Shown here piece by piece: positions 26,844-59,711 of a stretch of 64,000 nt of DNA. Each line of letters begins with the position of its first letter. Within the stretch, counting starts at the first letter, position 1. The notes under the pieces were generated by a model. It had not been told where the DNA came from, made no database searches, and saw only the letters and a program-made list of their open reading frames with translations. Source of the stretch: Macrostomum lignano (Eukaryota); the NCBI GenBank assembly GCA_002269645.1, contig NIVC01001743.1, forward strand, positions 62,001-126,000. The letters run 5' to 3'. A program made the position numbers and the translations under genes.

Positions 26844-27338
26844 CTACTCGGGCACAGCGTAGCTACCATCGTTCACTTTGTCGATGATATCGTGCGGATT
26901 CGAACCATCGACCGTGCAGCCAACGGACTGAGCTGTGCCAAGAATCTCTTTAACAGTGCCGGCCATAGTCTTAGCCATCGATCTCGGCCGCATCGTCTTA
27001 GCGATGTCAACAACCTCGTCGAAGGTGATGTTGCCAGTGTGCTTGACGTGTTTGACCTTCTTGCGATCGCGCGGCGGCTCGTTCAGAGCGCGGATGACCA
27101 AGGCGGAAGCCGTGGGCACCACGCTGGCCACCGCCTGACGGTTCTGAATGACCAGCTTCACCGTCACCTTCAAGCCCTTCCATTCCTTCGTAGCCTTGGC
27201 AATGTCTTCGCCGACCTTCTTTGGCGACAGGCCAAGCGGCCCAATTTTTGGCGCCAACGACGCTGTGGCGCCGACTTCGCCTCCGACGGCGCGCAGATAA
27301 ACAATGTTGATAGCGGTCGGGTCAATCTTGGGCGGCAT
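26844..27338 (-). CDS. RPL12: 60S ribosomal protein L12 (uL11), intronless CDS, 164 aa
   Basis: [90 protein letters not shown] lies about 75 nt after the stop (26761-26770). Confidence 0.98.
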
Positions 27339-29388: not shown

Positions 29389-31017
29389 TCAAAGCTCTTC
29401 GTGATTGCGCAACGCTTCGCCAAAGTCCGTAGCCTGACTGCCGGCAAAGATGTCGTGATGGTCCAGAATCTCCTGTTTTGATAAGCGGCCGTCTTTGTCC
29501 AAATCAGCTTGGCTGAACAGGTGCTTGGTCTCCGCGTCCACCTGCAGTTTGGGGGGGGGGTGAAATTTTAGTAGAGCTGATGGGAGAAAGTCTGTGGGGT
29601 GGGGATTAAGGGCGATTCTATGGGGGGTTGAGGGCGATTCTGTGGCGGATTGAGGACGATTCTATTTGAGATTAAGGGCGATTCTATAGGGGGATTAAGA
29701 GCGGATTCTATGAGGGGATTAAGGGCGATTCTATGGGGGATTAAGGGCGATTCTATGGGGGATTAGGGCGATTCTATGGGGGGATTAAGGGCGATTCTAT
29801 AGGGGGATTAGGGCGATTCTATGGCGGATTGAGGACGATTCTATTTGAGATTAGGGGCGATTCTATAGGGGGATTAAGAGCGGATTCTATGAGGGGATTA
29901 AGGGCGATTATATGGGGGATTAAGGGCGATTCTATGGGGGATTAGGGCGATTCTATGGGGGATTAAGGGCGATTCTATAGGGGGATTAGGGCGATTCTAT
30001 GGCGGATTGAGGACGATTCTATTTGAGATTAAGGGCGATTCTATAGGGGGATTAAGAGCGGATTCTATGAGGGGATTAAAGGCGATTATATGAGGGATTA
30101 AGAGCGGATTCTATGAGGGGATTAAGGGCGATTATATGGGGGGATTAAGGGCGATTCTATAGGGGGATTAGGGCGATTCTATAGGGGGATTAGGGCGATT
30201 CTATAGGGGGATTAGGGCGATTCTATGGGGGGATTAAGGGCGATTCTATAGGGGGATTAGGGCGATTCTATAGGGGGATTAGGGCGATTCTATGGGGGGA
30301 TTAAGGGCGGTTCTATGAGGGTCAACGGCGATTCTATGGGGGAATAAGGGCGATTCTATGGGGATTAAGGGGATTAAGGATAAATTCAAAACTATATAGT
30401 CAAGAAATGCCTTAGTTCAGGCACTAAAACTCACCTGATCATAATTAGTCGGCAGTATCCAGGCCGATACCTCAGCCAGATCAAGCTTGCCATCCTTATT
30501 AGCGTCCCGCTGCGATCGGAACGTGTCCCGCTCCTGCTGGACCCAGTCCGGCTCCGGCTCCCCGCTGTCCTTGCCCGACCACATGTCGCCGATGTATTCG
30601 GCTTCGTCAATCGCGCCGTCGCCGTTACGGTCGAGATCTTCCAGCGATTCCAAGGCGACAAGTTCGCGCATGTGGGCAGCCTCCTCCGGATGGGCGAAGT
30701 CGGTGAACTCGGCCAGGCTCAGCAGGCCGTCGGCGTCTCGGTCGGCGCGTTGCCAACGGCGACGCTCCCGTTCGATTGTCTTGGTGGTGTGCGGGCCTGG
30801 GGATGGGCCGAACACCTTCGTCTGGGGGATGGGAAGGGGGCTGATCATGCTCATATCTGCATGTCTGTGTATTTATAGCCACAGTGGCCTGTCTGTGTCT
30901 GTCTGTCTGTCTGTCTGTATGCCTGTCTGTTTGATTTAGTTTCTGTCTGCCTGCCCGTATGCCTGTTTGTCCTAGTATCTGTCTGTCTGTCTGTCTCTCT
31001 CTGTCTGTCTGCCTGCC

Positions 31018-31048
<31 letters not shown>

Positions 31049-31064
31049 GTTTGTCTGTCTGCCA

Positions 31065-31124
<60 letters not shown>

Positions 31125-31702
31125 TTCTATCTGTCAGTCAGTCAGTCTTTGCCTTAGTAGTCTGTCTGCACATCTAGCTCTCTGTCTTAGCATATCAGGC
31201 ATACACATAGTGCCCAGCTGCCCGCAGCCTGTTCTGCACATTGCGTTCATACATGAATTACGCCAGTCACCTTATAGGTATCCCAGTCGATCTTGGCGTC
31301 CTCCTTGCCGTCGCTATAGTCGTTAAACTGCCTTTTGCTGTTCTCGCGCACATACCGTTTGGCAATGTAATCAATCCAGCTGTACATCTCCTGCTGCGTC
31401 ACGAAACCGTCGCCGTCTTTGTCAATCTTGTCAACAATTTTAGCCAAAGCCGCGGTGCTCTGCTCCGGCGTCATCTGGTCGAATTTCTCCGAGTCCTCGT
31501 GGCCGAGAAATGCCTCATGATCAAATTTGTGATCGTCGGCTAGAGGGTCTTCGTTGTGTGGCAAATCGCTTAGCGGCTTCTCACCCTTGGCTATGCGATC
31601 TTTGCTGCTGACATGGAGAGCCGGGTTGCCGTAGCAACTGTTGCTATGGAGCAGTGTTACAATTAGCAGTAGAATTACTGCAGAGCAAATCTTGGAACCC
31701 AT
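29389..31702 (-). CDS. CALU: calumenin/reticulocalbin (CREC family) EF-hand ER protein, 3 exons, about 323 aa
   Basis: Exons 31271-31702, 30435-30821 and 29389-29541. Signal peptide, DHEAFLG, multiple EF-hands ([60 protein letters not shown]), [11 protein letters not shown] and a C-terminal HEEL ER-retention-like signal. CALU versus RCN cannot be resolved. Confidence 0.93.
29590..30370 (+). repeat. 21-22-bp G-rich minisatellite in calumenin intron 2
   Basis: Unit GGGGGATTAAGGGCGATTCTAT, with a ~178-bp higher-order period (marker GCGGATTGAGGACGATTCTATTTGAG at about 29645, 29824 and 30002). Confidence 0.95.
30885..31190 (+). repeat. (CTGT)n / (GACA)n microsatellite in calumenin intron 1
   Basis: Direct reading. 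Confidence 0.95.
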
Positions 31703-34700
31703 GCGAGTGCGTGACTGCATGAACAGAGTAAAATCAGAAGATTATAAATCAAATAAAATTGGCTCAGCAGCTGAGTGGCCACAAAGCCCTGGTTAGCTCT
31801 CATGCAAAGCCACATTATACTGGGGTTTGTGCAAAAAAACTAACTAATTCAGACCTATGAGCTGGTTTTCTTAGTGTCACAATTGTAATAGCATTGGTAT
31901 ATTGGGTCCAAATTCAGGATTATTTTATATTAAATGCCAACAGTCTATATTTAAGGTTTAGTAAGGTATGAAATAGGGATTGGATGATATCACATTTCTG
32001 CATCGAGATTTAAGATTAAGCAGTTAAGCCTAATTAGTATATAGTAGGCCTATTTACACTATTATATCTATCATTGCTAATTAATATTATTTGTTAAATG
32101 TGTACAATGATGATAATAGAAGGAAAAACAAATAATATAAAATATTGAGCTTGTTAGTAATTTGATGTGTATTTAATATAACACTGACGTACTGACAATA
32201 TCCTAGTCACCAATAGTCACAGAGTCACAAATCTTAACTTTTGAAATCTTGAAACCAAGATTGAGATTGAGAAAATTGCCAAGGTCCTGACAATTAAGAT
32301 CGAGATCTTATTTGATCCCTAGTATGAAAATAGGTCTAATGTAGAATAGCTATACAAAATAATATTTTGCAACTGCCAACTATACAAAAAATATATTTGT
32401 GCCTTTTGATACATATGAATATCAACTTGACTGCTTCTTGATTAAGCCTATTTTCTCTTTTCTTTATTTTTTTTCCTTTTTATTTTCCTGGCAATCTTTC
32501 ATTTCACTTTTGTATAGTCATGCTTAGACGCAACCTAGGGATTCACCTGACCATTTCTATTGACAACACACACACATGAGTCACTATTGGACAGAATAGT
32601 AGTCATGTGACTGCTCTTAGCCAATAGCAACTTACATGTGTGTGTTGCCAATAGAAATCGCTGAGTGAATCCCAAGGTTGCATATGCATGTGTATAGTTA
32701 ACTATTTTTTTAGAATTTTGTAATTTAAATGGGTATAAAATGATGTGGCTTAAAAGATTTATATTAGGCACAAACTCTAACTATCATTTTGGTCAATAGA
32801 CTTAGTCATGGTCAATGGTCATGGTCAATGTAGGACAAATTCAATTAACTTATCAATATGATTTATAGTCAATATCAGGTGATATAACTAATTTGTCTTT
32901 ATAGTTTAGGCTGTCTTATTGAATTACCAAAACTATGGCTAGCCATAGTGGCTAATAGCCACCTACTTACATCTAGAGAGGGCCTGAAAATTTGGCTAGA
33001 ATTTTGGGTACCCAAAATTTTGGGCATTTTCATTTCAAATTTTTGGGTATAGTTTCAATTTTGGGTATTACACTTTTGGGTAGATTGATACCCAAATTTT
33101 TAAGCTCATTGTATTATATAAGATTCATTAGAACCATTTGCTATATATGCTACACTTTCTATAAAAGGTTTGGGTCTGTCCTAATTTCATTATTGGGTCA
33201 GATAAATGCTTGAATGAAATGTGCAATCTATAGTGACTCAGTCAAAACAGGGTAAGAAAAAAACAACTTGGAAGGTAGGTGAGATTAATCACTTTAACAC
33301 TAGAGTCTAGACTAGGCACTGCTAGGGCATGGATAGGATACCAGACATAGTCACAATTAGTGAATTAATCTATATAAATTGATAATAAGCCTATAAACTT
33401 AATATAGAAAATAAGAGGCAAATCTAAATCTGCACCATTTAATTCCTCCCTCTTCTTTGTATGTTTGTCACTTCAGCCAACCCCTCCTCTTTTCTCCCCT
33501 AATCCTTCAATGTTTGCCACTTTAAACCCTCTTTCTCTTTTTTTCTCTCTTTATAAATTCATAATGGAATTTTATGGGTTTGCCTTGCCACCTAAACTTG
33601 TGGGCTCTACTGATCACACTCTCCTTTCATTATTTGATTCCAAACCCCCAAGTTGGCAACCCTCAAACACCAAAATCTGAGCCTAGTCTTGTGCAAGCTT
33701 TATATTGATTGAAAACAAATAAAATTGAAATGCTTGCCAGGTATATTCTTGTTGTGTTTGCTTTCAACATGGATTCTAAACATCTTTTCAGAGTTGAGGG
33801 ACTCATTGTGACTAAGAAGAGGAATTGGCTTTTAGCTAAAACCTCAGCTAGCTATTGTTCATTGAAGCTAATTTGAACTTAGTCTTAAGGCTCTAAATAT
33901 GCTTAATGAATAATGATATTCTTGAATATTTCAAATGAATATGATTGAAATATAAACTATATCTTAATTGCATGTATGCTTAATTGCATTGTTGGCTTTA
34001 AAATTTTGGGTTTTAGGTAGTAGCAAAAATCTTTTTTGGGCCATCTCTATCTTTATCTATAACCATTGTTTATTGTTGCTATTATATAGTCATTTCTTTC
34101 CTTAGGCTAGAAAAAGACTGTAAAAGGGAACTAGGCCTACCTGAACATATTTTAGGGCCTAGTGATAAGAAAATAGGCCTAGGCCTAGGCCGCCTAGTAT
34201 GCTAAAATACAGATTTTCTATGCTACAATACTAACTAAGGCTGAGATAGAGCTTACTATTGATTTGTGCCAACTGTCTGCTACTCCCATGTGAAGGGCCT
34301 AAACCCTATGGACTAGGCCTAGGCCTATGGTGATTGATTAAGACCAATAGCAAGAACAACAATGTGAAGATTAGGCCTCTATTTTCACCTGGAACTTTAG
34401 GCTTTAGCCATTGCCCATTGCTGACATAGACTACATTGGTGGGCAAATGGGGAATACATAGGCCTAGCTTAGTAGATAGACAGGGACAGCTTGCTTAGGA
34501 CTAGGCCTACTAAGCAGTAAGCTTAAAAGCTTAGTTCCCTTTGTAGAAAGATTTTGGCTTTAAAAAACCATTAGCATTAGCCAAATTCCAAATACACTAT
34601 TTCCTAGGCCTATCGTAATAGTCCTAATTCCGAAACTAACATGACTAGGTAGGCCCTAAGACCTAGGAATAAATGAAATCTATTCCTATATCCTAAATCT

Positions 34701-34740
34701 TCTAATATACTAAACCCATACACTAAAATGACGACAAATT

Positions 34741-35580
34741 ATAGGGTGCGTTCAGTACGTACGCTTGACATGACATGACAACACGGGACGGTTCTGAAGG
34801 CACCCGTGTCCATCCTAAAAAATATAATTTGTACAATTTTTTTCAAACAAAACAATAATGCAACGTGCTATATTTAAAACTTCACAAATAATAGCTTAAA
34901 AAAGCAGTCCTAAATTGTTTTTACATTTTTTGTTAAATCTAGTCACTTAAGCAGATTTTTAAAAATAGAGCTTTTCTACGAAGTTTTTATTCCCACCATC
35001 ACGATTCACATCCTTGGTACGGGTTCTTGGCGCATTTCTGCAGAAAAGTCTCTATTTCTATAGAAAAAAATCTATTTAATAAGCAATAGACCATAAGTCT
35101 TTAGATGTCAAAAGTTGCTGATTTTTTGTCCTTTTTTAGGCCTCCCAACAGTATATTTACACGTATACAATTATCGCCAAATAGATTATGAGCAATCCTT
35201 TTACTCGATAGTCGATAGGCCTATTTTTTCGTAAAAACCGCAAAAAAACTTATACGCTCTTTCAAATATTATATTTTATACAATTTTGTTATCACCTAAT
35301 AAATATCTATATAACTTATTTTTATAACCTATGGGCTAAACTGTTTTGCGCAATATCGCCAACTACATACATAAATTTCACGCAATACCTTTTAGCTCGT
35401 AACTCCCTGCTTTTTCTTCTCGTTTTTTCACCTCGTTAGTCGTCCGAAGTTTCGTCAACAAAATTTACGCGTTATTTAAAATACTATATAATTGCAAAAC
35501 TTGTACTTTGCAATCGTAGTAAATAACTAATGCTAAAATATTGCCTTCTGTTCCTGAAGTAATCTTAAAATACACAGAAA
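34741..35580. promoter_or_regulatory. CpG-retaining island, candidate bidirectional promoter region for calumenin and CPT2
   Basis: About 30 CpG in 840 bp counted by eye, versus about 9 in the preceding 3 kb. It lies between two divergently oriented genes. Confidence 0.5.
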
Positions 35581-36989
35581 TATATTGGCCAAACAGGCTT
35601 CTTGCCTGAGCCAACTTACTAATACTACTACTACTAAAAAGTTGGAATTCATTTCTTTAGGGTACAGCTGGGTTTGTTCATATAATCATAATCACCATCT
35701 ACTAAATCATAGTAAATCTCTAAGATCTGTCTGTCTGTGTCTGTATGACTTTTTGTCTGTAAGAGTTGTTAAAAAACAATTCTGCTATTTCTATCTCCTA
35801 ATTCCTTACTGTAGGGCCTAATTGACTCATTGACTGTAATTCAAATTCAAATATATTCTTCTATTTCATGCCATGAAATAGGCCTATACCCCATAGATAC
35901 TTGTAACTTGTAGTGCATTTAGGCCTAATTCTTAGCTATAGGAATGAAGGCATTCTTTCATTTTATGATCACAGCACTATCCCTATAGGATTTGGGACTT
36001 TCGATATATGATATCCCCTTTAGAAGATGGCAAAATTTCTAAGTTAAAATTAGGCCCTCTTAAAATCAAACTTCAAAATTGGATCACTTTAAGCGCAGTA
36101 TCATAGAATCAAGTCTTGTGTTTTGTTGAAATGTAGCTTATATTCACTTTTTTGATACTATCATTTAAATGGTGAAATTATATCTGGGCCTAGGCCCTAG
36201 GTGAGCCTAAAAACTAAAAGTTAGTTTTTAATTACAATCAGTAATCATATCAATAATAAAATTGGATTGGATTGAAGGATTGTTGGTTTTTAATTAAAAA
36301 ACATCAATAATAAAATGGGATTGAAAGGATCATATGAACTAATGGATTAATAAATTTGCAGTAATAATTTTGAGTTGGCAACAAATTTATTGTTAACATT
36401 AATGGCAATATAAATGACCAAAGATGCAAAGAAAGAACAAAATGTCAAAATATAAGTCTAAAGAGAAGTTATTTACAACATTACAAATGTATTTGAATTT
36501 ACCTAAATGCCTAATTAAGCCTAATCTATTTGTTTATGATGATGATCATGCAAATGTAAAAATTTCTTACTAATAAACTTTAATAATAAATTAAAATTGT
36601 GAATCTTTATTGCTTACATGTAGGCATTGATCACTTTGTTTTACTTCTTTCCTAATCTTTGTAACACTTAGCTGTGTTTACTAGGCCCAATGCTATTATA
36701 AGTTACTTCTATTACTATATGCTTGCTTTTAGTAATAGGCCCTATTATACATACAAGTTTTTTTAAATTATTATTTAATTTAAAACTTTTTAGCTTGTAA
36801 ATGCTTAGATGACCTCTGTGTTTCACTAAAAAGATGGAAAAGCAAAGAGTGCATTTAAAAAGTTTCTATTTTTAGAGAAGATTTCTATTTTTTGTGTTTA
36901 TTTTAACATTGATTCCTATTAATAATTAAGCTATCAATTAACTTTTAGTTAACTTAACAAAATTAAGAGTTAATGAGACAATAGGCCAC

Positions 36990-38165
36990 TTGGTTACGTG
37001 GACACACATGAGTGGCCTGCCTATGTCCTGCCTAGTCCAGACTATGTCCAAGATCACAGACATTGCCACCCCCGTGTCTAGGTGACACTGAATTGGGATT
37101 TTCTTATCCTTGTACACAAACTATAGGGTGACACAGATGGCATCCTGAGTCGGGCCTACAATTGCTCCAATTGTGAACAGGTCTCCATTCATTGCTAGGG
37201 ACTTGCTGAACACAAAACTGTACTGAGTCAATGTGGCCTGCAATGTCTGTCTTTGTCCAGCATACCTTATAAAAATGGTCAGTGGCATAACCAAGGGGGG
37301 GGGAAGGGTTGTTGCCCCCCCCCCTTAGGCGGAGACCCAAAAAAATCAAAGGGGGGACCAAGCAAATTTTTGCCATAAACAGAGCCATCTCTCTGTCCCC
37401 CTCCTAGGATTATACCCTCTAAAATCTGCCCCCCCTTTAGAAAAATTCTGGTTGCACTACTGAAAATGGTTTAGCTTAATTCACTTGTGACAAGCCTTCC
37501 CAGTTGTTGGGCCCTGCATTTTTCCATGCAATGAACCACATCAAGGATAGGTGGTGCTAGTGCTACCTTTGAACTTGCTGCAACTTTGTTCTTTCAATGA
37601 TTGTCCTTTTGAATTGAGCACACTGATCTTCATGACGGCCATACTCTCTCCTTTTGGTGCACTCTTCATGATCTCCATGGCTATTATGGTGGAATAAGCC
37701 TCAGCCTCGGCAACTGCATCCTTGAGGGTCAAGCTATGATGGTCTTGACCAAAAGCTTGCCTACAATCTGTTGATCCATCAGACTGCAGATGAGTTGGTC
37801 TTGCAGGTATTTATCTTTGTTATCAAATTTGCATTTCTCCAATGCCCTTAGAAGCCATTCAGCAAATGCCCACACTGACTCTCTAGGTGTGTGTGTGCAC
37901 TGTTGGAATGTGTACCATTCAGCCAAAACAAAGGTTGCCAGTACCAATAGTTCCTATAAGGCAGCCTCCAGCACTGCAGCTAACAATTGTTTCAGCTTTG
38001 TTGGAGCCACCCAATTGGCTACTCGGTCATACAGGGCCAGAGACAGGTTCATGAGCAGCATCTACACCTTAGTCTTGGCATCCCAGTAGTAAAATTTTGC
38101 CCAAACTTCAAAATGGTTCATCCATCAGGTGAAAGATTTCTGATGTCCAACCGCTCAATCTCCAT
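36990..38165 (-). mobile_element. degenerate Gypsy (K02A2.6-like) gag-protease relic
   Basis: Gag: WMNHFEVWA..VAPTKL..LAEWYTFQQC..ESVWAFAEWL..CKF..LQDQLICSL..LTLKDAV. Zinc knuckle CHK*IKLNHFYKVC once the MITE is removed. Protease IPIQCHLDTGVAMSVI, with LDTG at 37070-37081. Multiple stops and a frameshift. Confidence 0.85.
37280..37462. mobile_element. hAT-type MITE with 8-bp TSD
   Basis: Ends CAGTGGCATAACC and (reverse complement) CAGTAGTGCAACC. The flanking direct repeat AAAATGGT is at 37272-37279 and 37463-37470. Removing the element and one TSD copy restores the gag knuckle frame. Confidence 0.9.
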
Positions 38166-39249
38166 GGAGCCTCCTCTGGCTGGTGTGCATTGCTGCACTA
38201 GCAGCTTCATAAACTGGTGTCTTGACAATAGAGACTGCTGCCTTGGTTGACTGGCTAGCTGGTGGAATTGCTCCTGTTTTTGTTGGGGAGCTGAGTGTTT
38301 TTTGATGCAAGTCTAAAATGGAAAATGGAAAGTGCATAAAAGAATGGAAGGGTCATGCAAAAAATCATAGAAGCATCATGCAAAAACTCATGGACAAAAA
38401 TCACAAAATATTAAATTTAGGGTTAGGGTTAGGGTTAGAAGTTTGACAGGAGATTTTTTTAGATTTCAAGGCTACATGTAGCTTATTAAAAATATGTATT
38501 GCATTTCTTTGGCTCCCCAACAGGGGGTGTAGATTGCTAGTCTATAGCTGATCCTGCTCACAATGACACTGTTATGTTGTGGTTTTTTGAGAGTCTTTGC
38601 TCCCACAGTTACTTTTTGTTTTTTTGGCTTTCTTGCTAGCTTTGTCTCTTTACATATAATTCTTATTTAATGTAAAGTGCAGCCCACATTAAGTCATAGA
38701 CATAGACAAGTCTGCTGTGGCGGATAAATAAAACTAAATCCACAGCAAAAAGTTTTAAAATGTTGTTATTGTAATATTACTTAGCATATCTTCTTCAAGT
38801 TCTTTCACTAGAATAATCCATGGTTGCTCCTTATATTTCATTGAGTTCTTAGAGTCTAAAATGTAAAAAAATATAGTTTTAATATAGTTTTTATTAATTT
38901 AAGTAAACAATTTTATTATTGGCTGCTTTGTTATTTTTTACCTTTAGCAATCTGTGTTGGTTCCAATTGAATATAAATATTTTGTCTTTCTTCTATCTCC
39001 ATTTGCATACCTTAAAGACATGCACTGCCACTGGCATAGTGACTGTATATCTGGCTTGCCTGGAATGCAAATTGTTTTGAATGTTAAATGTAAATAGATA
39101 GAAGTCTGTCTATATATTCTGCTAACTTCTGAACATAATCTCTTACACATGCTAACATGTATATGTCAGCTCCAGATTGTCAGTCTGGCCCAGTTTAAGT
39201 TAATATTACTATAGCTAAATTATAATGCAATATCAGTTATATATAACAT

Positions 39250-39740
39250 AACATATGCTCTACTGACTCATGCCAGTGTGACACACGATATGCTCTACTG
39301 ACTCATGCCAGAGTGACACACGATATGCTCTGCTGGCTCATGCCAGTGTGACACACGATATGCTCTACTGACTCATGCCAGAGTGACACACGATATGCTC
39401 TGCTGGCTCATGCCAGTGTGACACACGATATGCTCTGCTGGCTCATGCCAGTGTGACACACGATATGCTCTACTGACTCATGCCAGAGTGACACACGATA
39501 TGCTCTGCTGGCTCATGCCAGTGTGACACACGATATGCTCTACTGACTCATGCCAGAGTGACACACGATATGCTCTGCTGGCTCATGCCAGTGTGACACA
39601 CGATATGCTCTACTGACTCATGCCAGAGTGACACACGATATGCTCTGCTGGCTCATGCCAGTGTGACACGATATGCTCTACTGACTCATGCCAGAGTGAC
39701 ACACGATATGCTCTGCTGGCTCATGCCAGTGTGACACAAG
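39250..39740 (+). repeat. 35-bp minisatellite upstream of the CPT2 start
   Basis: Unit TGCTCTACTGACTCATGCCAGTGTGACACACGATA, about 14 copies with alternating variants. Confidence 0.96.
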
Positions 39741-39880
39741 ATGTGCGATAATGCTTTTATGTCAGATCTTTAAGCTTATGTAATGGAATCAAACACGAAT
39801 TATGAATTATTGCCACAATAATTTGTCTGCAACAAATTGCTTCTTTATGTCTGCTGCATGCCATTCAGCCAGCAATTATC

Positions 39881-42838
39881 ATGCTATCCGTCTTACTTCG
39901 TCAGTGTCGGGTTCCCCGTTCCACTCCGACATCAGGTCGCTTATTGTCAACCTCGGCTAGCAACATCCTTGACGAGCACCTGCTGCACCGAAGTCCTGTG
40001 CACACGGAGTTTTTCCAGGCCAGCCTGCCTCATCTGAAAGTCCCAGATCTCAATGCCTCAGTAGAGAAGTACCTGAACTCGCAGAGGCCGCTGCTAACAG
40101 ACGAGCAGTTCTCCGCCACCACATCGATCTGTCAGGAGTTCCTCAAACAGGACGGACCCGAGCTGCAGCGCCTCCTGTTGGACTATGATAAATCCAATAG
40201 CGATGGCAACTATGTGAGCGACTTCTGGTTTGACATGTACCTGCGCGACAGGCGTTCTCTTGTGCTCAATCATACACCGTTTCTGGCGTTCTCCGCCGCG
40301 CCTGAGCAGCCCGATCCACTGGATAGGCTGACCAACATGGTCTATTCGTCCGCCAGGTACCAGCTGACCTATGCTAATCGGGTACTGAAGCCCGAAGTGT
40401 ACTTTCTCGATCCGAAGCTGAGCGAGGAAAAATTTTATCAGAGAATGAAGATGCTCTCTAGGTGAGAGTTCAGTTCCGTTATATATCGAGATTTGAACAG
40501 TAAAGTACAATAGAATTTGTTGAAAAATCGAACCTTGGACCACACCAAAATTTTACACCCATAATGGATGTTTACATGTCTGCTACTCTACTTATAGTAA
40601 AAATATAGGAAGGATAAGAATAATATAATAATTGATTACACTTGCCCTGATGGGGGGCGGCGCATCTGAAGGTAGCGTACGGCTGTTCAGCCCAATGACT
40701 GGGGGGGGGGGTCGCCACACTCACCCTTAATTACCCCAGTTAATGTTGGAACCCATTTTACAGCTGGGTCACCTGAAGCAATGCAAAGTTAAGTGGCTTG
40801 CTCAAGAATTGTTCCAAGTGGGTCGGGAATCGAACCACCGACCTTTCAGTCGTTTTTTTTTACAAAAAGTTTAACAACACCTCCCCAATGCACTCTGGCA
40901 GGATTCCCGGCCATTCTCGGCTGGCTTGGGCCGCCGCCTATTTGCACAAAGCGTTCCCGCTCGACATGTCCCAGTATCCCAATTTGATGGCGTCCACTCG
41001 GCTGCCTCAGACTGGCCGGGACTCGCTTCGACGCTATCCGGACTCGAGGCATATTGTGCTCATGCGTGGCGGCCGGTTCTACAGCTTCGATATTATTGAG
41101 GTGATATATCTGTAGCGATTTTTTATTTAGTAGCCGATATGTAGCGATTGTTACATTTAGTAGCCGATATGTAGCGATGGTTATTTCGGTAGCCGATATG
41201 TAGCGATTCTTATTTTCAATAGCCGATATGTAGCGATTATTATTTCAGTAGCCGATATGTAGCGATTGTTATTTTCAGTAGCCGATATGTAGCGATTGTT
41301 ATTTTCAGTAGCCGATATGTAGCGATGGTTATTTCGGTAGCCGATATGTAGCGATTCTTATTTTCAATAGCCGATATGTAGCGATTATTATTTCAGTAGC
41401 CGATATGTAGCGATGGTTATTTCAGTAGCCGATATGTAGCGATTGTTATTTTCAGTAGCCGATATGTAGCGATTGTTATTTTTCAATGGCCGATATAAAG
41501 TACATATGTACTTTTGCCCGAAATTCAGCCCGACGGCCTCAGCATCGTCCCGGCCTCAACAATCCGGGCTCGCCTGTCCGAATGCCTGGCCGATTCGCGT
41601 CCGGCCGCCGAGTTTCCGGTTGGCGTCCTGACCTCGGCCGACCGCGACGTCTGGACTAAAGAGCGGCAGAAGCTGGCCCACGCCTCCAAGACTAATTCTG
41701 CCTCGTTAGAGGCCATTGACTCTGCGCTGTTCCTCGTCTGCCTAGACGAATCCCAGCAGACCAGCGACTCGGCGCTCTGTCACGCATTCCTGCACTCTGG
41801 CGACGGTGCCAACCGATGGTGGGACAAGAGCCTGTGCCTCATGGCCATCCTGCCGGTTGGCGAGTTCGCAGTCAGCTTTGAGCACAGCTGGGGCGACGGA
41901 GTGGCCGTGTCTCGGTATTTCAACGAAGTGTTCAACGACTCGAATCGGTGAGTTCGGGGCGTTGCTATTGTGCGCTCTTTATTAGATCCGCATGAGATTC
42001 CTCAATGAGATTAGATTAGATTACTGTTTAGATACGACCGTGAGATTTCAATGAAAACTCAGTCAGAAAAGAACCAACCGGGAGGTCTCCAATTAAATCT
42101 CCAATGAGACTAGATACGACCGTAAGATCTCAATAAAATCTTCCTATGAGATTAGATACTTACGCGAATGTTCTCTTTGCGATTAGATAGATGCCTTCCT
42201 CAAGTGTTAATGCGATCCTACGATTAGGTATATTTCATTAGATTTCACTAAAATCTCTCCATGATATTAGATGCCTGAACTCTCATCCCCAACCCCCTTT
42301 CCCCAGCCGTCCCGGCCTCTCCTCAGGCCAGTCCGAATCCCTCGCCGCAGACTCAGCCTCTGTCCGGCGGCTCGAGTTCGATTTGGACGACAGCCTGAAG
42401 GCCTCCATAGCAACCTGTCGCGAGCAGCTCTCAGCCCGGACAGCCGATCTCGACTTGGACTTCTGGCAATTCGACGGCTTCGGCAAGTCCAGCGCCAAGC
42501 GGGCCGGCCTCAGCCCCGACTCAGTGTCGCAGACGGCCATCCAGCTGGCCTACTACTGGCTGAGCGGCGGCGCCACCGCCCCCACCTACGAGTCCTGCAG
42601 CACGGCCGCTTTCCGGCGCGGCCGAACCGAGACCATTCGATCCGCTACCTCGGCTACGAAGGAGTTCTGCCGGCTGGCCGGGGGCAGCGAGCCCGCACCG
42701 ACCGACCAGCTGCTGGCCGCGCTGAAGGCTGCGTCTGATGCGCACTCCACTCTGACTAAGGATGCCGCTATGGGCAAGGTGAGGCTTGGGGCAGACAGAC
42801 AGATAGACAGACACACAGACAGGCAGACAGACAGACAC

Positions 42839-42869
<31 letters not shown>

Positions 42870-42940
42870 CACAGACAGACAGACATACAGACAGACACAC
42901 ACACAGACAGACAGACAGACATACAGACAGACAGACAGAC

Positions 42941-42997
<57 letters not shown>

Positions 42998-43022
42998 CAC
43001 ACAGACAGACAGACATACAGAC

Positions 43023-43067
<45 letters not shown>

Positions 43068-43074
43068 CACAGAC

Positions 43075-43119
<45 letters not shown>

Positions 43120-43178
43120 CACAGACAGATAGACAGACACACAGACAGACATACAGACAGACAGACATACAGACAGAC

Positions 43179-43259
<81 letters not shown>

Positions 43260-43286
43260 CACACACAGACAGACAGACATACAGAC

Positions 43287-43327
<41 letters not shown>

Positions 43328-43358
43328 CACAGACAGATAGACAGACACACAGACAGAC

Positions 43359-43395
<37 letters not shown>

Positions 43396-43442
43396 TACAG
43401 ACAGACAGACAGACATACAGACAGACAGACAGACATACAGAC

Positions 43443-43535
<93 letters not shown>

Positions 43536-43907
43536 TGCTCAAAGGCAATGCCCCAAACCGCTCCCCAGGGCTGGGACCGGCACTTATTCGCCCTGCGCTG
43601 CATGTCGGAGCGCCGTGCCGGAGGCGCCGTCCCCCGCCTGTTCACGGACCCGGCCTATCGCAAGATAAACGAGATCGTGCTGTCCACCAGCACCCTGTCC
43701 ATGCCGGCCGTGAAGATCGGCGGCTTCGCCCCGGTCAGCCCGGCTGGCCTTGGAGTCGGGTACGCCATCGAGGACTCGTCGATGGGCTGCGTGGCCACGG
43801 CGTACAAGTCGAGCAGCAGGAGCTCGGCAGAGTTCATGCGGTGCTACCAGCGGGCCTGCCTGCTGCTTGCTGATGTTATTGGCAAGGCGTTGGATGCTAA
43901 GAAATAA
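39881..43907 (+). CDS. CPT2: carnitine O-palmitoyltransferase 2, 5 exons, about 669 aa
   Basis: Exons 39881-40461, 40902-41100, 41529-41947, 42307-42778 and 43569-43907. Mitochondrial presequence, [38 protein letters not shown], catalytic [42 protein letters not shown] and GGFAPV. Confidence 0.96.
40615..40890 (-). mobile_element. tRNA-derived CORE-type SINE in CPT2 intron 1
   Basis: The minus strand reads B-box GGTTCGATTCCC, then TTGAGCAAGCCACTTAAC...CAGCTGTAAAATGGG (resembling the CORE/MIR GGGCAAGTCACTTAAC...CTGTAAAATGGG), then a TTA-rich tail. Confidence 0.7.
41110..41490 (+). repeat. 31-33-bp minisatellite in CPT2 intron 2
   Basis: Unit AGTAGCCGATATGTAGCGATTGTTATTTTC. Confidence 0.95.
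42793..43535 (+). repeat. (GACA)n microsatellite filling CPT2 intron 4
   Basis: About 740 bp of a 790-bp intron. Confidence 0.98.
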
Positions 43908-44614
43908 AGAGATTTGCTTGATGAGGAAAATATTGATAGCTTCTTCGACTGAAAATTTTACAGTAAACAAACTTTAGAAGCTTATGTAAGGCGTGTGTCT
44001 CTCGTTGGCAATATTGCGCTGACTCCTGACCACACCCAAGCGCGCCACTTGCGCTCACACAGAGCGTTCAGCGGCCTGACTGTCTAATCGTCAGACCATG
44101 TAAGGAAATTAATTAAAATTTCTACGGTTTGTAATTGTTAGCATTAAATAACAAAAAAATTAGGTTTCTATATGTTATACTGCCTCGATATTATTTTTAT
44201 TGTATTTATTGCGTTAGTTGACTTGATTGTAAGATAAATTTAGCTATAACGTTGACTCTACTATAAATCTTGTTGTTTGTTGTTTTTCTTTCAAAAATTT
44301 TGGTAATAAATTTTCAATAAATTCTGCTTACAAATCATTAAAATGAAGGCTTTCAGTTTGATTCGATTCTCTAGTTTAAGCCACAGCTACGGTTACTAGA
44401 AAAACTTGGTATGTCAATTTTAAAACTACGCTCATCTACTGTTTTATCAGTAGCAAAATTAGCACTTTTTGCCCTTTTACGAGTAATACTATAAAAACCC
44501 TAATCCAGTGCGTCTGCACAGCGAGCAAGAGAGAAAAGGCCAGGCCGATAAACAGTTTGCTTTTCCTCCTTCCCGCTCAAGGTGAGGTCAAAGTGAACAC
44601 TTTGTGTCGAAGTC

Positions 44615-44835
44615 AGACACTTTGACCTCTCTCCTTACTGCTCTCTCATTGGCTGAGCTACGAGTCGATTGGGCCTGCCACCTAGGCTGAGTTTCGTCCG
44701 TCTGATTTTGACCTCTCTCCTTACTGCTCTCTCATTGGCTGAGCAAGATTGGGCCTGCCTCCCCCCCCCCTTAGGCTGAGTTTCGTCCGTCTGACTTTGA
44801 CCTGTCTCCTCACTGCTCTCTCATTGGCTGAGCCA
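44615..44835. repeat. triplicated ~87-bp unit containing ATTGG (CCAAT) boxes
   Basis: TTTGACCTCTCTCCTTACTGCTCTCTCATTGGCTGAGC at about 44621, 44708 and 44796. Confidence 0.85.
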
Positions 44836-46532
44836 GTGACGCAGCGCAGAGAAACTACTGAAAGAGTAGATGCTCTACTTTTTCACAACTTTAATGCGGG
44901 TGAACATCTGATCCAGATATTCCAGTATCTGTGGTTTAAGCATAGAGAAATGGCCAATTATATTTTGTAAATTAGGAAAATCGACTCATAAAATCCAGTG
45001 GAGTTTGATCGGAAATGACTTTTTCACTTAAGAGCCTGTACTTTAGGCCATAGTCACGTTTATCCTGCATTTGGCGAGGCCATGATCCTGTCTTGCTTCG
45101 ACCTTGCTTGAAGAGAGGAAATGAGAAGGAATAAAGAAGTGAGAAAAGGAAAGGAGAAGAGAGAGGAAAGCAAAGAGAGGAAAAAGAACGGAGAAGAGAC
45201 CCAAGCCCCGTGCTGGCCGCATTGCTATTGTGCAGTATCGAAGGACCGGATGGCCGAATTAGTTAGGACCCTGGCTTAGCAACCGTGGATTAGTCTTGCT
45301 TTCAACTGCTTTGATTGAAATTTAAAATGATTGAAAAATGATTGAAAGTAATTGCCTAATAAATCCTAATGTGCCTATAAAAATCTGCTAATCTGCCCAC
45401 TAAATTGCATCATTCTTACTTAAAATTAAAAATAAAATATATTGCAACTAACTCGGAACATCAGGTGATATTATTAGCTTGATTTATTGTGCATGATAAT
45501 TATTCAGCTTATTCAGCTTATTAATGTCATTTAATGGTCAATTAAACAGCCCAGGTTGACAATGACATCCTACACTCGGATGAACCAGTCCCAGTAGTGA
45601 TAATATTTGCAAAGCACTCGTGCACACGTTCACATGGGTGTACAGCGGTCCTGACTAGCTTTCTAATCTTCAGGCATTGTACACTCAGTGCCTTTGGGGA
45701 AGGGGGTTGGCCCTCATGTTGAATCGTGAACCAGGGGCCGTGGCGCGAGTGATGACAATCCACGCGGATTACTGTATTACATGTAGGTCTGTGACCGCAG
45801 ACATTCCAAGAAATCGATCAACTTGTTGTCCAACAGATCAGTAGCATCACGCGTACCGAAACTCAGAAATGCATGTACTTTCTTCCAGCTCGTCAATCGA
45901 TGTATCATGATCTTTAAGGCTCTGCATGCGGTGAAACATGTCATTTATGGGTCATAATTATTGTCAAGATCACAAAAATAAACCTTGAAGCACGAAATCA
46001 ATTTGCTCCAACCTAATGATCAGACAGACGGACAGACAAACAGTTAGGCACAGTCAATGACGCACAGAAAAATGATGTGAACTTTCTGTAGTATTTCGTT
46101 TTTTATCGCATATTAGGTAAAATTTGTACTAAAGGTGCAGAGGTTAAATTTTACAGCAAAAAATCGGCCTTTAATTTCCCCCACGAATTAATTTTGAGTC
46201 CCTTAGAAAGCTGTGGGATTTCACCGAAGTCTGTTTAACAGTATAAAGAGATCGTGAATGGTTCCTCTCCCTCTCTATCAGCTCCTTATGAACTTTCTGA
46301 GTCGCACAAATAACAAAAAATTGCATCAATTTACTAAAAAAGACGGATTTGCATAAAAATCGTGTTTAATAAATTCCGATTGCCGACCATTTCTGAAGCG
46401 GATTCTTTCGCCGAGAAGGTTTATTTTAAAAAAAATGAGTATAAAGTGTCCGGTAAACGCAAAATTCAGCCGAAAAAAGCTACGCCACAGACGGGCCTAG
46501 AAAGTCGGCTTCATCAAGAATGCCGATGCCGG

Positions 46533-47816
46533 TCACTCCTCCTTGGGCTCGGCATCAGCAGCGGCGGCGGCGGCGGCGGCTGCAGCATCTGCAGGCTTCG
46601 AGGTGCTGTTCTGCGAGCTACCAGCGTTGGACTCGCCGTCTTTCTTGGCCTTGTCTTCCTCCTTGCGCTGCCAGGGCACGCTGAGGTAGAAGAAGTTCGA
46701 CTCGCGGTGATACGGCAGCACCATGTTCTTGAGCTCGGCGAACTCCTCGACATACTTCTTGATCCGTTCGGCCTTCTTGCGGTTAAGCACCACAGGCTGG
46801 GTGCCGTCCGCGATCAGCGTGGTCTTAGCCGTGGCGTAGTCGTCCTTGAACGAGTCGTACAGCTTGTCCATCTTCTTCGGGTCCAGCTGGTGCAGCTTCT
46901 TGGCCTTCAGGTCGTTGATCTCGTCCCGGATCTCCGTCATGTCCGTGTTCTGCGCGGTGAAGACGTTGGCCAGGTTGTCCTCCTTGCTGGTCTCGTAGAA
47001 GCTCTGCATCTTCTCGAACACCTTGATCCTGGTGCGCACGTGGCTGACCAGGTTGTTCAGCTTGCTCTCCTCGTCCTTGCCATCGTTCATCAGCTGGTTG
47101 TAGTCGGGGAAGATGCTGAGCTCCATGTCCGTGCGGCTCGTGTCTGTCGAGAACAGCGCAGCCAGGCCCTTGCCCTCCGAGGTCTTCAGGATCTTCTCGT
47201 CGAAGGAGCGGAACACCGACTGGTCGGCCTTGCGCATGTTGTCGGTGAACTTGGCCAGACCGGTCTTCTGCGCGCTCTCCTGACCCTTGGCCTTGGCCTT
47301 GGCCGGGCTGGCGCCGCCTTCTGCTTTGGCGTCGGCGCCGTCCGCGCTGTCCGGGCTCGCGCCACCGCCAGGCGTCTTCTTTCGTCGGCGCCGTTTTTTG
47401 CGCTTCTCGCCTGCGCTGGCGGCGTCTTTTTCGTCTGCGATCGGCTCGCCGAAGGGCGACAGGAACAGCGGGTAGGCCTCGGCCAGGGTCATGTCCTTGT
47501 TCTTGTCGTTGCCAGTCTCTTTGTTAAGGAAGCAGTAGCGCTCCTGAAGCAGGTAGAACATCTTCATCTTGAAGAAGAGCGCCTTCTCGTCGGGGCTGAG
47601 GAAGGACGGCTGCGTGAGGTCGGCGGTGGCCGAGGTGAAATCGGTGGGGCCGGCCTCCATCTTGCAGAGGTTCCGCATGATCCTCTTGCAGTCATCTGTC
47701 AGTATGAGGTTCTCGTTGCGCTTGTCAATCACAATGTCGCGGTCTTTGATGTTCACCCGCATTACTCCATCGTCTGGGCCGACGGAGACCCGCTTCTGAG
47801 AGGGTTGCTCAGCCAT
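46533..47816 (-). CDS. intronless 427-aa protein of unknown function with a basic NLS-like motif
   Basis: Uninterrupted ORF with strong G/C third-position bias (AAG, GAG, GAC, TTC, CTG), an AG acceptor 11 nt before the ATG (CACAG|GATCGCAAGCCATG), KRKKRRRRKK and a poly-Ala tail typical of the host genes. No recognisable domain. Confidence 0.85.
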   Translation of the reverse strand: MAEQPSQKRVSVGPDDGVMRVNIKDRDIVIDKRNENLILTDDCKRIMRNLCKMEAGPTDFTSATADLTQPSFLSPDEKALFFKMKMFYLLQERYCFLNKETGNDKNKDMTLAEAYPLFLSPFGEPIADEKDAASAGEKRKKRRRRKKTPGGGASPDSADGADAKAEGGASPAKAKAKGQESAQKTGLAKFTDNMRKADQSVFRSFDEKILKTSEGKGLAALFSTDTSRTDMELSIFPDYNQLMNDGKDEESKLNNLVSHVRTRIKVFEKMQSFYETSKEDNLANVFTAQNTDMTEIRDEINDLKAKKLHQLDPKKMDKLYDSFKDDYATAKTTLIADGTQPVVLNRKKAERIKKYVEEFAELKNMVLPYHRESNFFYLSVPWQRKEEDKAKKDGESNAGSSQNSTSKPADAAAAAAAAAADAEPKEE

Positions 47817-48069
47817 GGCTTGCGATCCTGTGTTCCCTTGTTTTGCTTTTGCAAGCTGCTTCTTTACACGGGGCCCAGCAGATTATTTTCTTTCAAGCCG
47901 ATTGACACCTCCTGTACAACAGACTGAGTTGCCTTATATAATTGCACTCGTTCCAGCTCTGCCTCGATACACCGTTGCCTTTCAAGTTGTGCCATAGACA
48001 TCAGATTAATATCTGATTCCGAATTTTATACTGACTCTTATAGGCGCATTTAGTATGGGAATCTTAGAC

Positions 48070-48395
48070 ACAGAAATTCCAGATTGATCGAGAGGGACCA
48101 CAGGAATTCCCGATTCAACCACAACCAAAGGGATTCCCGATTCAGATAGGGGAATTCCCGATTCAGATAGGGAAATTCCCGATTCAGCCACAAGCAAAGG
48201 AATTCCCGATTCAACCATAACCTAAGGAACTCCCGAGTAAGATGGGGAATTCCCGATTAAGACGGGGAATTCCCAAATCAGTCAGAGCCAAAGTGATTAG
48301 TTAGGGCCAAAGAGATTTCAAGATTCAGATAGGGGGATTTCGGATTAGGTCAGAACATTCAGAAGCAAAGGGATTCAAAAAGGAATTCCCGATTC
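48070..48395. repeat. degenerate ~20-bp repeat with a GGGAATTCCC palindromic core
   Basis: About 10 GG(A)ATTCCC cores. Perfect GGGAATTCCC at 48150, 48245 and 48265, and GGGAAATTCCC at 48170. Confidence 0.8.
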
Positions 48396-49110
48396 TAATT
48401 TTAGCTTTGTCGTACAAGTTTTGACCAAAAATTTCAGAGAATTTTAATGGATAAAAGCATCAAAAACAACAAGCCACGCTCGTAATTGGAGTTCAGCAGA
48501 ACCAATTAAGTAAAAGAATCGCCTCATCAGCCGGTCCACCCTAAATGAGTGTAATATAATTGGATAGAACCTACACTTAATACAACACCTTATAAAAGTT
48601 CAATTTGGGTTTAAATAGACAAAAAGGGAAAATCTGAATAGCAAACACACAGCCAAATAGTTGTATAACTGGTTGCTAAGGGCTTTCGATCCTGCACTCG
48701 GCTGATGAAATTAGCATTCAATACATTGGCATTCGGGATTTGCTTGCGAGTAAAAAACTCCAAGGATAAATGACAAAAAATTTTAACAGCAAAACAGATA
48801 GCATCATCATTTCTCACAAGCAGCATAACTAGAATGATAATAATTAGAATTTGGCCTAAAAATTGAAAATTAATTCCGACTTTGTATGCATAAAATTGCA
48901 AATAATCAGGAGCACTAATGTAGGTACCTTTCTACCTGAATTAATAGATTTAAATCGAAGTTGCTATTCTGTTTGGAAGGCGTATAATTAAGGTATAAAT
49001 AACAATTTCATGCAAAAAGGCTTACTGTAAATACAACAACAGAGAACTAAATATTCTGGAATATTATTGTTAAATTTAAAGGGTAGGACAGGCCCTTATT
49101 ATAGGGATGA

Positions 49111-50822: not shown

Positions 50823-50859
<37 letters not shown>

Positions 50860-50882
50860 CACAGACAGACACACAGACACTA

Positions 50883-50947
<65 letters not shown>

Positions 50948-51156
50948 CACAGACAGACAAACAGACATTAAGACAGAGAGACAGACAGACAGACAGACAC
51001 ACAGACACACAGACAGACAGACAGACAAACAGACACTAAGACAGACAGACAGACAGACACACAGACAGACACACAGACAGACAGACAGACAGACACACAG
51101 ACAGACAGACACACAGACAGACAGACAGACATTAAGACAGAGAGACAGACAGACAC

Positions 51157-51203
<47 letters not shown>

Positions 51204-57106: not shown

Positions 57107-59711
57107 CTAAAATTGGTGACAAAAGTATACAGTATGCAAATTACAGTTAATTTAATATACGAGTAACTTCTTAAGCTAAAGATCCTGATTACATTGAAAA
57201 ATCCTAGAAACTTAACAAAAATTGGAATCCTGATATCATCTGATCTAAAAAATGTCAAACCAAATTCAACCTATATATATACTTATATATTAGACAGGGA
57301 TCCTACAGATATTATTCATATAATCCTAAAATATTGGGATCCTAACAAAAAAAGAACTATGATCCCATCCAATTCTTAAAAATCTTGATCATGTCAGACT
57401 TTTGTTTTAAAAGTCAAAGTCAAAAGGCTTTTAAAAGGCCTTTAAGCATATAAAGCCTTTATTGTTCTTTTTTAATATAGATATATTTAGGCTTACATTA
57501 TAGTTACTAACAATTACTAATGAGTGAATAATACTTTATATTGTATATATATAACTAAGGTTATTATGCTTAAATTTTGTTTAATAGTTTAAAGATTATA
57601 TATTTGAAAACAGTAACAGATCTAGGAATTCTGTTTTGGGGAAGGGTGGGCTATCAGTAGGGGTGCCAACATTCACAGAAATGGTACTAAAATTTGCAGC
57701 AAGGGTCCCTATATTTGTAACAATGATGCCATAAATAAAATGGGTATCATCAGTAGAGGATACCATAAACCCATGACCAAAATTTGTCCCTGTTTGTAAA
57801 GTAGCCAATATTTTTTTATAATTAGGCCTTATATTAATATGCTACTTAGTAGTCTAGCATGGCACTTGGCTTGGGTCTGCAAGTGCAATCAATACCTTGA
57901 AGGCCAATCATTTAAGTACAATTAAATATGTATACTTACGAATAAATAAAATTAAGGCCATAATATATTCTTATAAGTACGTCTATAGGAATGATTATGA
58001 CTATGTTAATCTATGTCAATATGTTATATCTAGAATATAATAACATGAAAAAATTAATAAGATTTATTTATAGTTTTCAAAATCTCACATAAATGACATA
58101 ATTTATAAAAACATACCTGAATTCGTGCCATTTGGATATTTTGAAAACCAGGTCCAGAATGCTTTTTTAAAAACTGTTTGCTGATTATATTTGTATTAAC
58201 TTAATGACCAAGTGAAATACTAAAAATTTGCTATGCAGCAACAGGCAACATCAACATGCACATAAATGATAAAGTGAAGTTATAAGGATGCAGGTCTACT
58301 AAAGGTCTAAAGTTAGTATTTTATTAATTATTTATTAAAGCTTTACTTATTTTGCTAAGAAGTTGTTTTTCTGACAGACAAAAATTAATTCACAAACTTT
58401 ACTACAACAAATCTTTACGCCTAATTTCAACTCAACTTATTATTTGACAACTGAATTTAGATCAATACTAACATGTCCTTCCAATCTAGCCTTATCTTAT
58501 CCAGTTAAAAGAATGGAATAAGTTCAATGAATATGCTTTAGAAGTATTTGCAAACTGATTCTTCGCAATAATAAGCAATATTATTATTTTAATTTGAATT
58601 ATAATACCTAGATGCAAAATTTTTATTTTTACAGCTTCAAAAAGTGGTACGATCGCTCGCGAATCGTAGAAAAAAAGCTGTTTGAATTTGTAACATCCTT
58701 CGTTTGGAAGCAAAATCGTATAACAACTGCTGACTAAATACCGCTTTTTTGCAGCACCAAATTGCTTTAAGGATAGTGAAATAAATAATCTACTTGGCTA
58801 TTTGTAATTATACAAAAATAATTTAGAAGTATTATGAGTTTTACATTAGGCCCTCGTTATTTGTCCGGTACCGGAGAAATAATGTTTGCGTTATTTGTCG
58901 TTATTCCTCCGGTATACTAAAAATAGCCTAATGGCTCTAACGGTAATTTATCAGGTTGGTCGGCATATAGCTGCGCCTAAAGCCAAAAGGAAAAAATAAG
59001 TGACTTAGACCAAATTTAATATTTTATTGAAAAGCAAAAGCGGAAACCGCTTATTACAGTTTTTATTGCTACATTGTTTAAAATTAGAATTAGCAGCAGC
59101 AAAGTATTTAGGAGACATAGTTCGAAAATTCTATCATAATGTACGCTTAAGACCAGAAACTATAATCTGAATAGTGGATAATCAATTTAACTAGTATAGG
59201 TCCTCAGTTTCACACATTTTAAACTACATTTTACTTAGTGTGTATGCTCAGTGACAGTGACGTTGCAATGGCAAATTAAATTACACCAACTCTTGCAAGT
59301 ACCAACACAATTTTTCTTATGGCAAATTTTTCTGAAAGTAATTTCAGGACCTACATATACATGTATATACTAGGTCAAAGGTTTCAATGACGAGATCCAT
59401 ACATTTAGCTACATGTAGACATGTAGCTATATGCGTCCCATAGATTGCATGAATTTTTAGACAAAATTTTGGCATTCACAAATAGGCTATGGTGTTTTCA
59501 CTGCCATGGAGAATTTTATATTTGATTAAATACTTTAATACACCTGTATTTTATTTTTTTTTGCATATACATAAATGAAAATATGTAAATAAAAATATAC
59601 GCTTCGTCTTCATTTCCTGTTATATATGAGTATATTAATATATTTTACATTTTTAAAAAAAAGTACACATGCTGCGTATCTTAGGCTTACATGCCCCGAC
59701 AAAATGTGCAA

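Follow-up and report, generated by a model that had tools for sequence, protein, structure and literature searches.

Macrostomum lignano (GCA_002269645.1, contig NIVC01001743.1) has two divergent genes separated by an 8.2-kb spacer from most of which the dinucleotide CpG has disappeared, and this spacer is the subject here. The window, that is the whole stretch of 64,000 nucleotides analyzed, runs from 62,001 to 126,000 of the contig, and coordinates without a contig label are those of the window. Over 16844-37338 the window is 100% identical to positions 78844-99338 of this contig. To the left of the spacer is a reticulocalbin/calumenin-type EF-hand gene on the minus strand (29389..31720), with three coding exons and a signal-peptide ATG at 31702; its splice model is 100% identical to Reticulocalbin-3 of Macrostomum lignano in UniRef. 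To the right, on the plus strand, is a carnitine O-acyltransferase (CPT2-like) gene (39881..43907) with its ATG at 39881. Between them lie block 1 (31715..34610), CpG-depleted and flanking the reticulocalbin gene on its 5′ side, a CpG-retaining patch, island 1 (34611..35526), a second depleted block, block 2 (35527..39252), and a tandem array of fourteen 35-bp units (39253..39746) that separates block 2 from the CPT2-like ATG. A third depleted block (57167..58561) lies 5′ of an SNX9-type gene, which is on the minus strand with its ATG at 57097-57095 and encodes SH3 and BAR_3_WASP_bdg domains, and a second island (58562..59160) is distal to that block. No DNMT gene is present within the window.

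The boundaries come from a two-state hidden Markov model (HMM) applied to the whole window after masking of tandem repeats, which yields seven segments with distinct ratios of observed to expected CpG (o/e). The segments are normal at 12-31710 (o/e 1.03), depleted at 31715-34610 (0.07), normal at 34614-35515 (1.43), depleted at 35527-39888 (0.11; block 2 is the part of this up to the 35-bp array), normal at 39889-57160 (0.95), depleted at 57167-58561 (0.15) and normal at 58564-63998 (0.85). Block 1 has 6 CpG in 2896 nt, with a GC content of 34% and a GpC o/e of 1.40, and block 3 has 4 CpG. An earlier note, made from the letters alone, had counted CpG by eye in slightly different intervals for the depleted DNA and the islands, and its counts are reproduced exactly: 9 in 31741-34740 (o/e 0.10), 30 in 34741-35580 (o/e 1.46) and 11 in 35581-39200 (o/e 0.09). 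Judged by the rate in AT-matched undepleted DNA from the same sample, where the o/e is 1.02, counts this low have Poisson probabilities of 5e-27 for 31741-34740 and 2e-37 for 35581-39200. The stretch 32655-34150, which had been described as having none, is near-empty with a single CpG at 32659 (P = 5e-17), and the longest CpG-free stretch outside tandem arrays is 32659-34191 (1532 nt). The pattern does recur upstream of the SNX gene, as had been claimed, with 4 CpG in 57300-58550 (o/e 0.16, P = 2e-7) and an o/e of 1.44 in 58560-59160. A comparable domain proposed around SCAI exon 1 dissolves into just a 435-nt CpG-free gap (1108-1543) in DNA of 21% GC, and the HMM places no depleted segment within 12-31710, where that gap lies. 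Elsewhere in the window many further bins have zero CpG, but these are tandem arrays built from a unit without CG; they do not belong to the depletion phenomenon and were masked in every later analysis. When the sampled DNA is divided into 500-bp chunks (n = 168), CpG o/e falls into two modes, one at 0-0.1 and the other at 0.7-1.2, and the depleted blocks hold 1.4% of all CpG vs 15% of the sampled length.

The loss is specific to CpG. GpC o/e is 1.3-1.6 in all the counted intervals, and in pooled depleted DNA, where the o/e values are 0.09 for CG, 1.47 for GC and 1.18 for TG/CA, every dinucleotide except CG is at 0.78 or above; AT-matched undepleted DNA has 1.02 for CG and 1.06 for TG/CA. Comparison of AT-matched 300-bp chunks gives TpG/CpA as 1.16 in depleted vs 1.06 in undepleted DNA (bootstrap 95% confidence interval of the difference 0.04-0.17), and the excesses of both TpG/CpA and TpA in depleted DNA are significant. 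Rough arithmetic from dinucleotide frequencies puts the number of CpG lost from 13.8 kb at about 280, of which the excess of TG plus CA covers about 144 and the excess of TA about 119. The GC content of depleted DNA is 2.7 points below that of undepleted DNA. The expectation of the earlier note, CpG-specific loss with a reciprocal gain of TpG/CpA, is thus what is found, and neither of the first two outcomes that it had named as fatal to its proposal, an equal depletion of GpC and other dinucleotides or the lack of a TpG/CpA excess, is seen.

Depletion is also sharply bounded. On the HMM segmentation the outer edges of the two spacer blocks are no more than 13 nt from both start codons: the left edge of block 1 is 2-13 nt upstream of the reticulocalbin ATG, and CpG is dense again from 39889, which is 8 nt past the CPT2-like ATG. 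Block 3 begins 70 nt upstream of the SNX9-type ATG, at which an acceptor-like ttttag stands at −9 (57098-57110). Similar blocks occur at other sampled loci. In L006 and L008 a 3.4-kb block with an o/e of 0.13 stops 2 nt short of the point where the coding sequence of a PTPS gene begins, and that coding start (L008 6860-6870) has no genomic ATG and is directly preceded by aaaattgcag. From the sequence, this is probably a trans-splice acceptor, and the SNX ttttag site looks like a spliced-leader acceptor; flatworm spliced leaders can supply AUG. In L011 (NIVC01000013.1), which holds a paralogous reticulocalbin gene, a 2.1-kb block with an o/e of 0.21 ends at the ATG of that gene, and the 8-kb divergent spacer has the same depleted, normal, depleted layout as in the window. 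For the reticulocalbin, CPT2-like, SNX, PTPS (L008) and paralogous reticulocalbin (L011) genes the block end is in this way 0-70 nt from the first coding base, and a position upstream of that base is the sole regularity found for the choice of blocks. Also in L011, a gene call of 972 amino acids has its 5′ exon (L011 1353-1898) inside a depleted block, with a weak match to a transposase zinc-ribbon domain (E = 0.007), and this gene may derive from a transposon and have a first exon poor in CpG.

The blocks are resident DNA. Two further copies of the locus are present in the assembly, one about 99% identical to the window (L005, NIVC01000129.1) and one 94-96% identical (L010, NIVC01000412.1), the latter collinear as far as 34301 and non-collinear beyond. 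Block 1 is syntenic in both, at 99% and 94-96% respectively. Foreign or misassembled DNA, the remaining outcome that had been named as fatal, was rejected, as three contigs (NIVC01001743.1, NIVC01000129.1 and NIVC01000412.1) have the blocks in synteny at 94-99% identity and the blocks adjoin host genes. The idea that the blocks are high-copy transposons was also set aside, as among the sampled loci they have no interspersed matches, homeologs only.

For one part of block 2 the ancestral state can be read. At 37007..38301 on the minus strand are the gag and the start of the protease of a decayed Ty3/gypsy-type long terminal repeat (LTR) retrotransposon, with several stops and a frameshift, ending before the reverse transcriptase; at least 1.3 kb of 31740-39200 is accordingly decayed retrotransposon. 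A 72-amino-acid stop-free stretch (37732-37947, minus) matches the gag region of polyproteins in exhaustive HMMER/phmmer searches (P0124, P0126), the Pfam domains of the matched polyproteins being gag-asp_proteas, RVT_1, RNase H and integrase, and the extent of the remnant is from a tblastn map. The gag pseudo-protein itself has no Pfam match, a word-indexed protein search with the gag fragment gave none, and Pfam searches with the ten longest stop-free stretches, eight from blocks and one from each island, were likewise without a match. Relative to the closest relative, arginine is kept at 1 of 25 positions vs 173 of 306 for other residues (P = 1e-7). Of the 24 arginines that changed, half have become W, H, Q or stop, which are the one-step products of CGN codons when CpG becomes TpG or CpA, and only 14 of the 133 changed residues other than arginine are in that class; further replacements of arginine include K and Y. 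This codon comparison shows DNA that was CpG-rich on arrival and then eroded in place: arginine codons decayed, and therefore the CpG was lost after insertion, where the DNA now lies. Loss against an ancestral state is demonstrated for 37007-38301 only. Just 5′ of the remnant, at 38419-38437, are three TTAGGG telomere-type units that may be in the leader or LTR of the element.

Genes, by contrast with the blocks, have kept their CpG. Exon o/e is 1.0-1.2 for reticulocalbin and 0.86-1.08 for the CPT2-like gene, and twelve exons pooled from the reticulocalbin, CPT2-like, SNX, RPL12 and SCAI genes give 0.99, in agreement with the earlier note; CpG-bearing tandem arrays are spared too. Unique intron pieces are mostly at 0.97-1.37, with two short pieces at about 0.5, and other spacers show no depletion (0.83 for the convergent spacer 43908-46532 and 0.75 for the spacer 47817-50013). 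The CpG columns of tandem arrays show no hypervariability. The higher-order array at 59723-60576 was considered and rejected as evidence of decay, CpG being absent from its consensus unit; the few CpG that the array does have may be variants of a repeat of higher order, 160 nt long. A spacer that lacks about 90% of its CpG while genes keep theirs is the mutational mark of long-term methylation on spacers.

Island 1 has 32 CpG at an o/e of 1.43 and a GC content of 32%, with an HMM core of 902 nt, and is present in L005 at 99.3% identity. Island 2 has 22 CpG, an o/e of 1.44 and the same GC content. The high density that had drawn attention to the first of them is real, and the implied distinction is smaller than it seemed, since the islands are only mildly above AT-matched background (Poisson P = 0.04 and 0.07): island 1 is ordinary undepleted AT-rich DNA or at most slightly richer, and it is the blocks that are exceptional. 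With respect to the Gardiner-Garden and Frommer definition of CpG islands its length is over 200 bp and its o/e over 0.6, while its G+C is not over 50%. Island 1 has no long open reading frame (ORF) and its longest stop-free stretch has no Pfam match; Rfam and tRNA scans of the window found nothing. The two islands were considered as copies of one repeat, an idea that was dropped as they have no similarity to each other or elsewhere in about 190 kb of sampled sequence. A search around them for target-site duplications or terminal repeats produced only an unconvincing 10-nt inverted repeat (34571, 35527). Island 1 would then be a patch spared from erosion, as either a protected promoter or a later insertion.

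The first of these alternatives can be extended to a scheme, close to that of the earlier note, in which each island is the true transcription start and in which the depleted DNA from there as far as the first acceptor or ATG would be outron or 5′ intron and methylated. That the limits of blocks are at start codons or, for SNX and PTPS, at acceptor-like sites is what such a scheme would lead one to expect, and the same layout at two divergent gene pairs, in the window and in L011, also speaks for it. However, block 2 harbors the retroelement remnant in antisense orientation, the two window islands share no sequence, and other CpG-normal patches in blocks are demonstrable mobile-element insertions. 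The middle segment of the L011 spacer (L011 4813-7901; 3.1 kb, GC 42%, with motifs resembling those of a reverse transcriptase of a long interspersed nuclear element, LINE) also looks like an insertion, though the LINE assignment as such was discarded, the motifs being discerned by eye only and Pfam giving nothing. The scheme is on balance doubtful. Because of the analogues provided by the L011 middle segment and by the inserts described next, we lean slightly to an insertion over a promoter for island 1.

The inserts in question differ between homeologs and are within depleted blocks: L005 4430-4693, L010 2323-5007 and the 960 bp of L007 2226-3185. The first is within a copy (L005 4422-4714) of a miniature inverted-repeat transposable element (MITE) of about 293 bp, itself CpG-rich, with terminal inverted repeats CATGCGCAAC...GTTGCACATG; another copy, at L010 119-411, is 98% identical and occupies a different site within the depleted block. 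The second is a 2.7-kb relative of the MITE (L010 2318-5016) with a tandem array inside it. SNX intron 1 (56797-56949) contains an old copy of about 78% identity, which has several changes of CG to TG or CA.

Taking these strands together, the explanation that we consider the probable one, with appreciable room for doubt, is that the blocks are non-genic DNA that has long been CpG-methylated in the germline and whose CpG has been eroded by deamination, with gene bodies, arrays and inserts spared. The blocks, which flank transcription units on the 5′ side or separate them and are in part old transposon remnants, would have been methylated over a long period; deamination of 5-methylcytosine (5mC) would have converted nearly all of their CpG to TpG or CpA and then partly to TpA. 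Exons, most introns, CpG-bearing arrays, other spacers and recent insertions would have been unmethylated or only briefly methylated, leaving CpG at expectation, and the island would be a patch of spacer that escaped erosion through protection as a promoter or through later arrival. For past germline 5mC on the 5′-flank and intergenic blocks the evidence is solid though indirect, and we infer from the sequence both that 5mC caused the loss and that methylation of the blocks continues. The earlier note had proposed mosaic methylation of 5′ introns, outrons or promoter flanks. Its emphasis on 5′ flanks is borne out, with edges at start codons or a probable first acceptor, and the depletion has proved sharply bounded and recurrent at the SNX, PTPS and paralogous reticulocalbin loci; 31740-39200 itself is intergenic spacer and not intron. 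That note had also placed the species in a group where methylation is debated. For M. lignano the matter is hardly contested: reviews citing Wasik et al. 2015 (PMC11292947, PMC9246332, PMC10658182) record that it has kept DNMT1 and DNMT3 and that its level of 5mC is low. The dispute is about parasitic flatworms and planarians. If methylation is confined to the blocks, with their 1.4% of CpG, global 5mC would therefore be ‘low’.

Several observations weigh against the methylation-erosion explanation. Methylated 5′ flanks of housekeeping genes would be unusual among animals. The integrase remnant at 14307-14922 (minus, frameshifted; rve E = 9e-7, Integrase_H2C2 weak) lies in CpG-normal DNA, and so transposon identity is insufficient for depletion. 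Between homeologs 9 of 14 CpG sites in blocks have changed vs 32 of 512 elsewhere; as a test of ongoing CpG hypermutability this is confounded, about 12 new CpG being expected from ordinary mutation of TG/CA and the comparison having no outgroup to polarize the changes. All block inserts that differ between homeologs are CpG-normal, and the 35-bp array has kept the sole CpG of its unit in 12 of 12 aligned exact-length units; methylation may not be spreading to new DNA or may have stopped, and inserts and array fit either that or very young inserts. Lastly there are two compositional features that deamination does not explain. CC/GG is at 1.33 in blocks vs 0.96 in normal DNA, and the hexamer TAGGCC/GGCCTA has 62 sites in 17.8 kb of depleted DNA, about 23-fold over the expectation from base composition, while being at expectation in undepleted DNA.

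Those compositional features are what would favor an origin without methylation, in which the blocks are intrinsically CpG-poor, as a repeat class or acquired DNA, or were subject to some other CpG-directed mutation or selection. The arginine-codon decay of the gag remnant is loss after insertion, the excess of TG/CA and TA roughly offsets the missing CpG, and the blocks are single-copy, syntenic host DNA, all of which run counter to it; CpA is not depleted, which excludes a process like repeat-induced point mutation (RIP). We regard an origin without methylation as very improbable.

The hexamer itself is the core of a palindrome, TAGGCCTA. Its sites in the window span 32045-37153 and cluster densely in 34132-34650 and in 35815-36982; (AGGCCT)n forms short runs at 34173-34191 and at 34312-34328, and the unrelated block at L011 1353-4811 has 26 sites in 3.5 kb. 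A much larger palindrome in block 1 has 61-nt arms (32530-32590 and 32621-32681) that are 80% complementary and separated by a 30-nt loop, and is kept in both L005 and L010.

The unaltered inserts raise a different alternative, that the signature is a fossil: the blocks were methylated in an ancestor, methylation is no longer acting, and later insertions are for that reason CpG-normal. All three homeolog-polymorphic inserts suit this, as does the retention of CpG in the array 39253-39746, and the window and its 99% identical copy in L005 have no CpG difference inside blocks, a comparison with almost no statistical power. The MITE copies, however, being 98% identical, may be too young for decay, and the block o/e of 0.07-0.13 gives no sign of recovery. 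For the species, DNMT1, DNMT3 and measurable 5mC are on record (PMC11292947 and PMC9246332). A fossil signature is accordingly unlikely, though well ahead of an origin without methylation, and erosion of blocks that are methylated in the germline remains our preferred explanation.

A bolder extension of that preferred explanation would be an inverted methylome, in which germline 5mC is placed specifically on the kb-scale DNA that precedes the first acceptor or start codon of transcription units, gene bodies are free of it, small unmethylated AT-rich patches are the real promoters and a motif of the TAGGCCTA type could aid targeting. This is speculative and we would not expect it to hold as a whole. 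On the preferred explanation itself, the blocks predict from sequence alone where 5mC would lie: on about 15% of the DNA and only 1-2% of CpG, upstream of genes and outside gene bodies. That would account for the ‘low’ global 5mC, and M. lignano would be a counter-example to the invertebrate gene-body rule. The species is the flatworm model in which DNMT1 and DNMT3 persist, and eroded or methylated upstream DNA may matter for the choice of promoter fragments for transgenes.

Some neighboring features deserve a brief mention. RPL12 is a single-exon gene (26844-27338, minus) encoded on six assembly contigs, with an identical protein in two contexts, one beside reticulocalbin and the other beside PTPS and a gene for a GPN-type GTPase (L006-L008). 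Identity between the DNA of the two contexts is only about 85%, suggestive of an old duplication or a retrocopy under strong purifying selection. The integrase remnant is flanked by related 36-nt and 76-nt arrays (12521-12942 and 15514-15895). A CpG-free satellite family with units of 28/29 bp (AGCCTCCCAGATCC(C)TCAGTTGCTGGGCC and a related unit) recurs within introns of genes that are unrelated and lie on different contigs, at 54900-55304 and 8299-9700 in the window and at L011 10441-10876.

Among known systems the closest relation is to mosaic methylated genomes, with which M. lignano shares a deficit of CpG only, a gain of TpG/CpA, two sharp sequence classes and, from the literature, DNMT1 and DNMT3. 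In the usual invertebrate mosaic, however, it is broadly expressed genes whose bodies make up the depleted class. In M. lignano that class is upstream and intergenic DNA, and gene bodies are at an o/e of about 1, the pooled exons at 0.99 being the reverse of what a gene-body mosaic would have. Vertebrate CpG islands are brought to mind by a CpG-retaining patch of about 0.9 kb, between divergent genes, with flanks at an o/e of about 0.1. Yet vertebrate islands have a GC content of 50% or more, vs 32% in this patch, a putative promoter; the vertebrate background is CpG-poor, whereas M. lignano is not depleted overall (about 15% of the sampled length is); and, unlike vertebrate islands, comparable patches at other M. 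lignano loci are young mobile-element insertions. The erosion of CGN codons in an LTR remnant within a block resembles the outcome of methylation targeted to transposons or heterochromatin in plants, fungi, vertebrates and some invertebrates. In contrast to that, most block sequence has no recognizable transposon, the integrase fragment and the MITEs are undepleted, and block edges track gene starts rather than element ends. Fungal RIP also erodes selected blocks by C-to-T change with an AT-rich outcome, but its target is duplicated DNA, chiefly at CpA; the blocks here are single-copy apart from homeologs, have no bias of CpA to TpA, with CpA at 1.18, and have lost only CpG. From this perspective the blocks behave like the methylation-decay compartment of a mosaic genome, one without depleted gene bodies.

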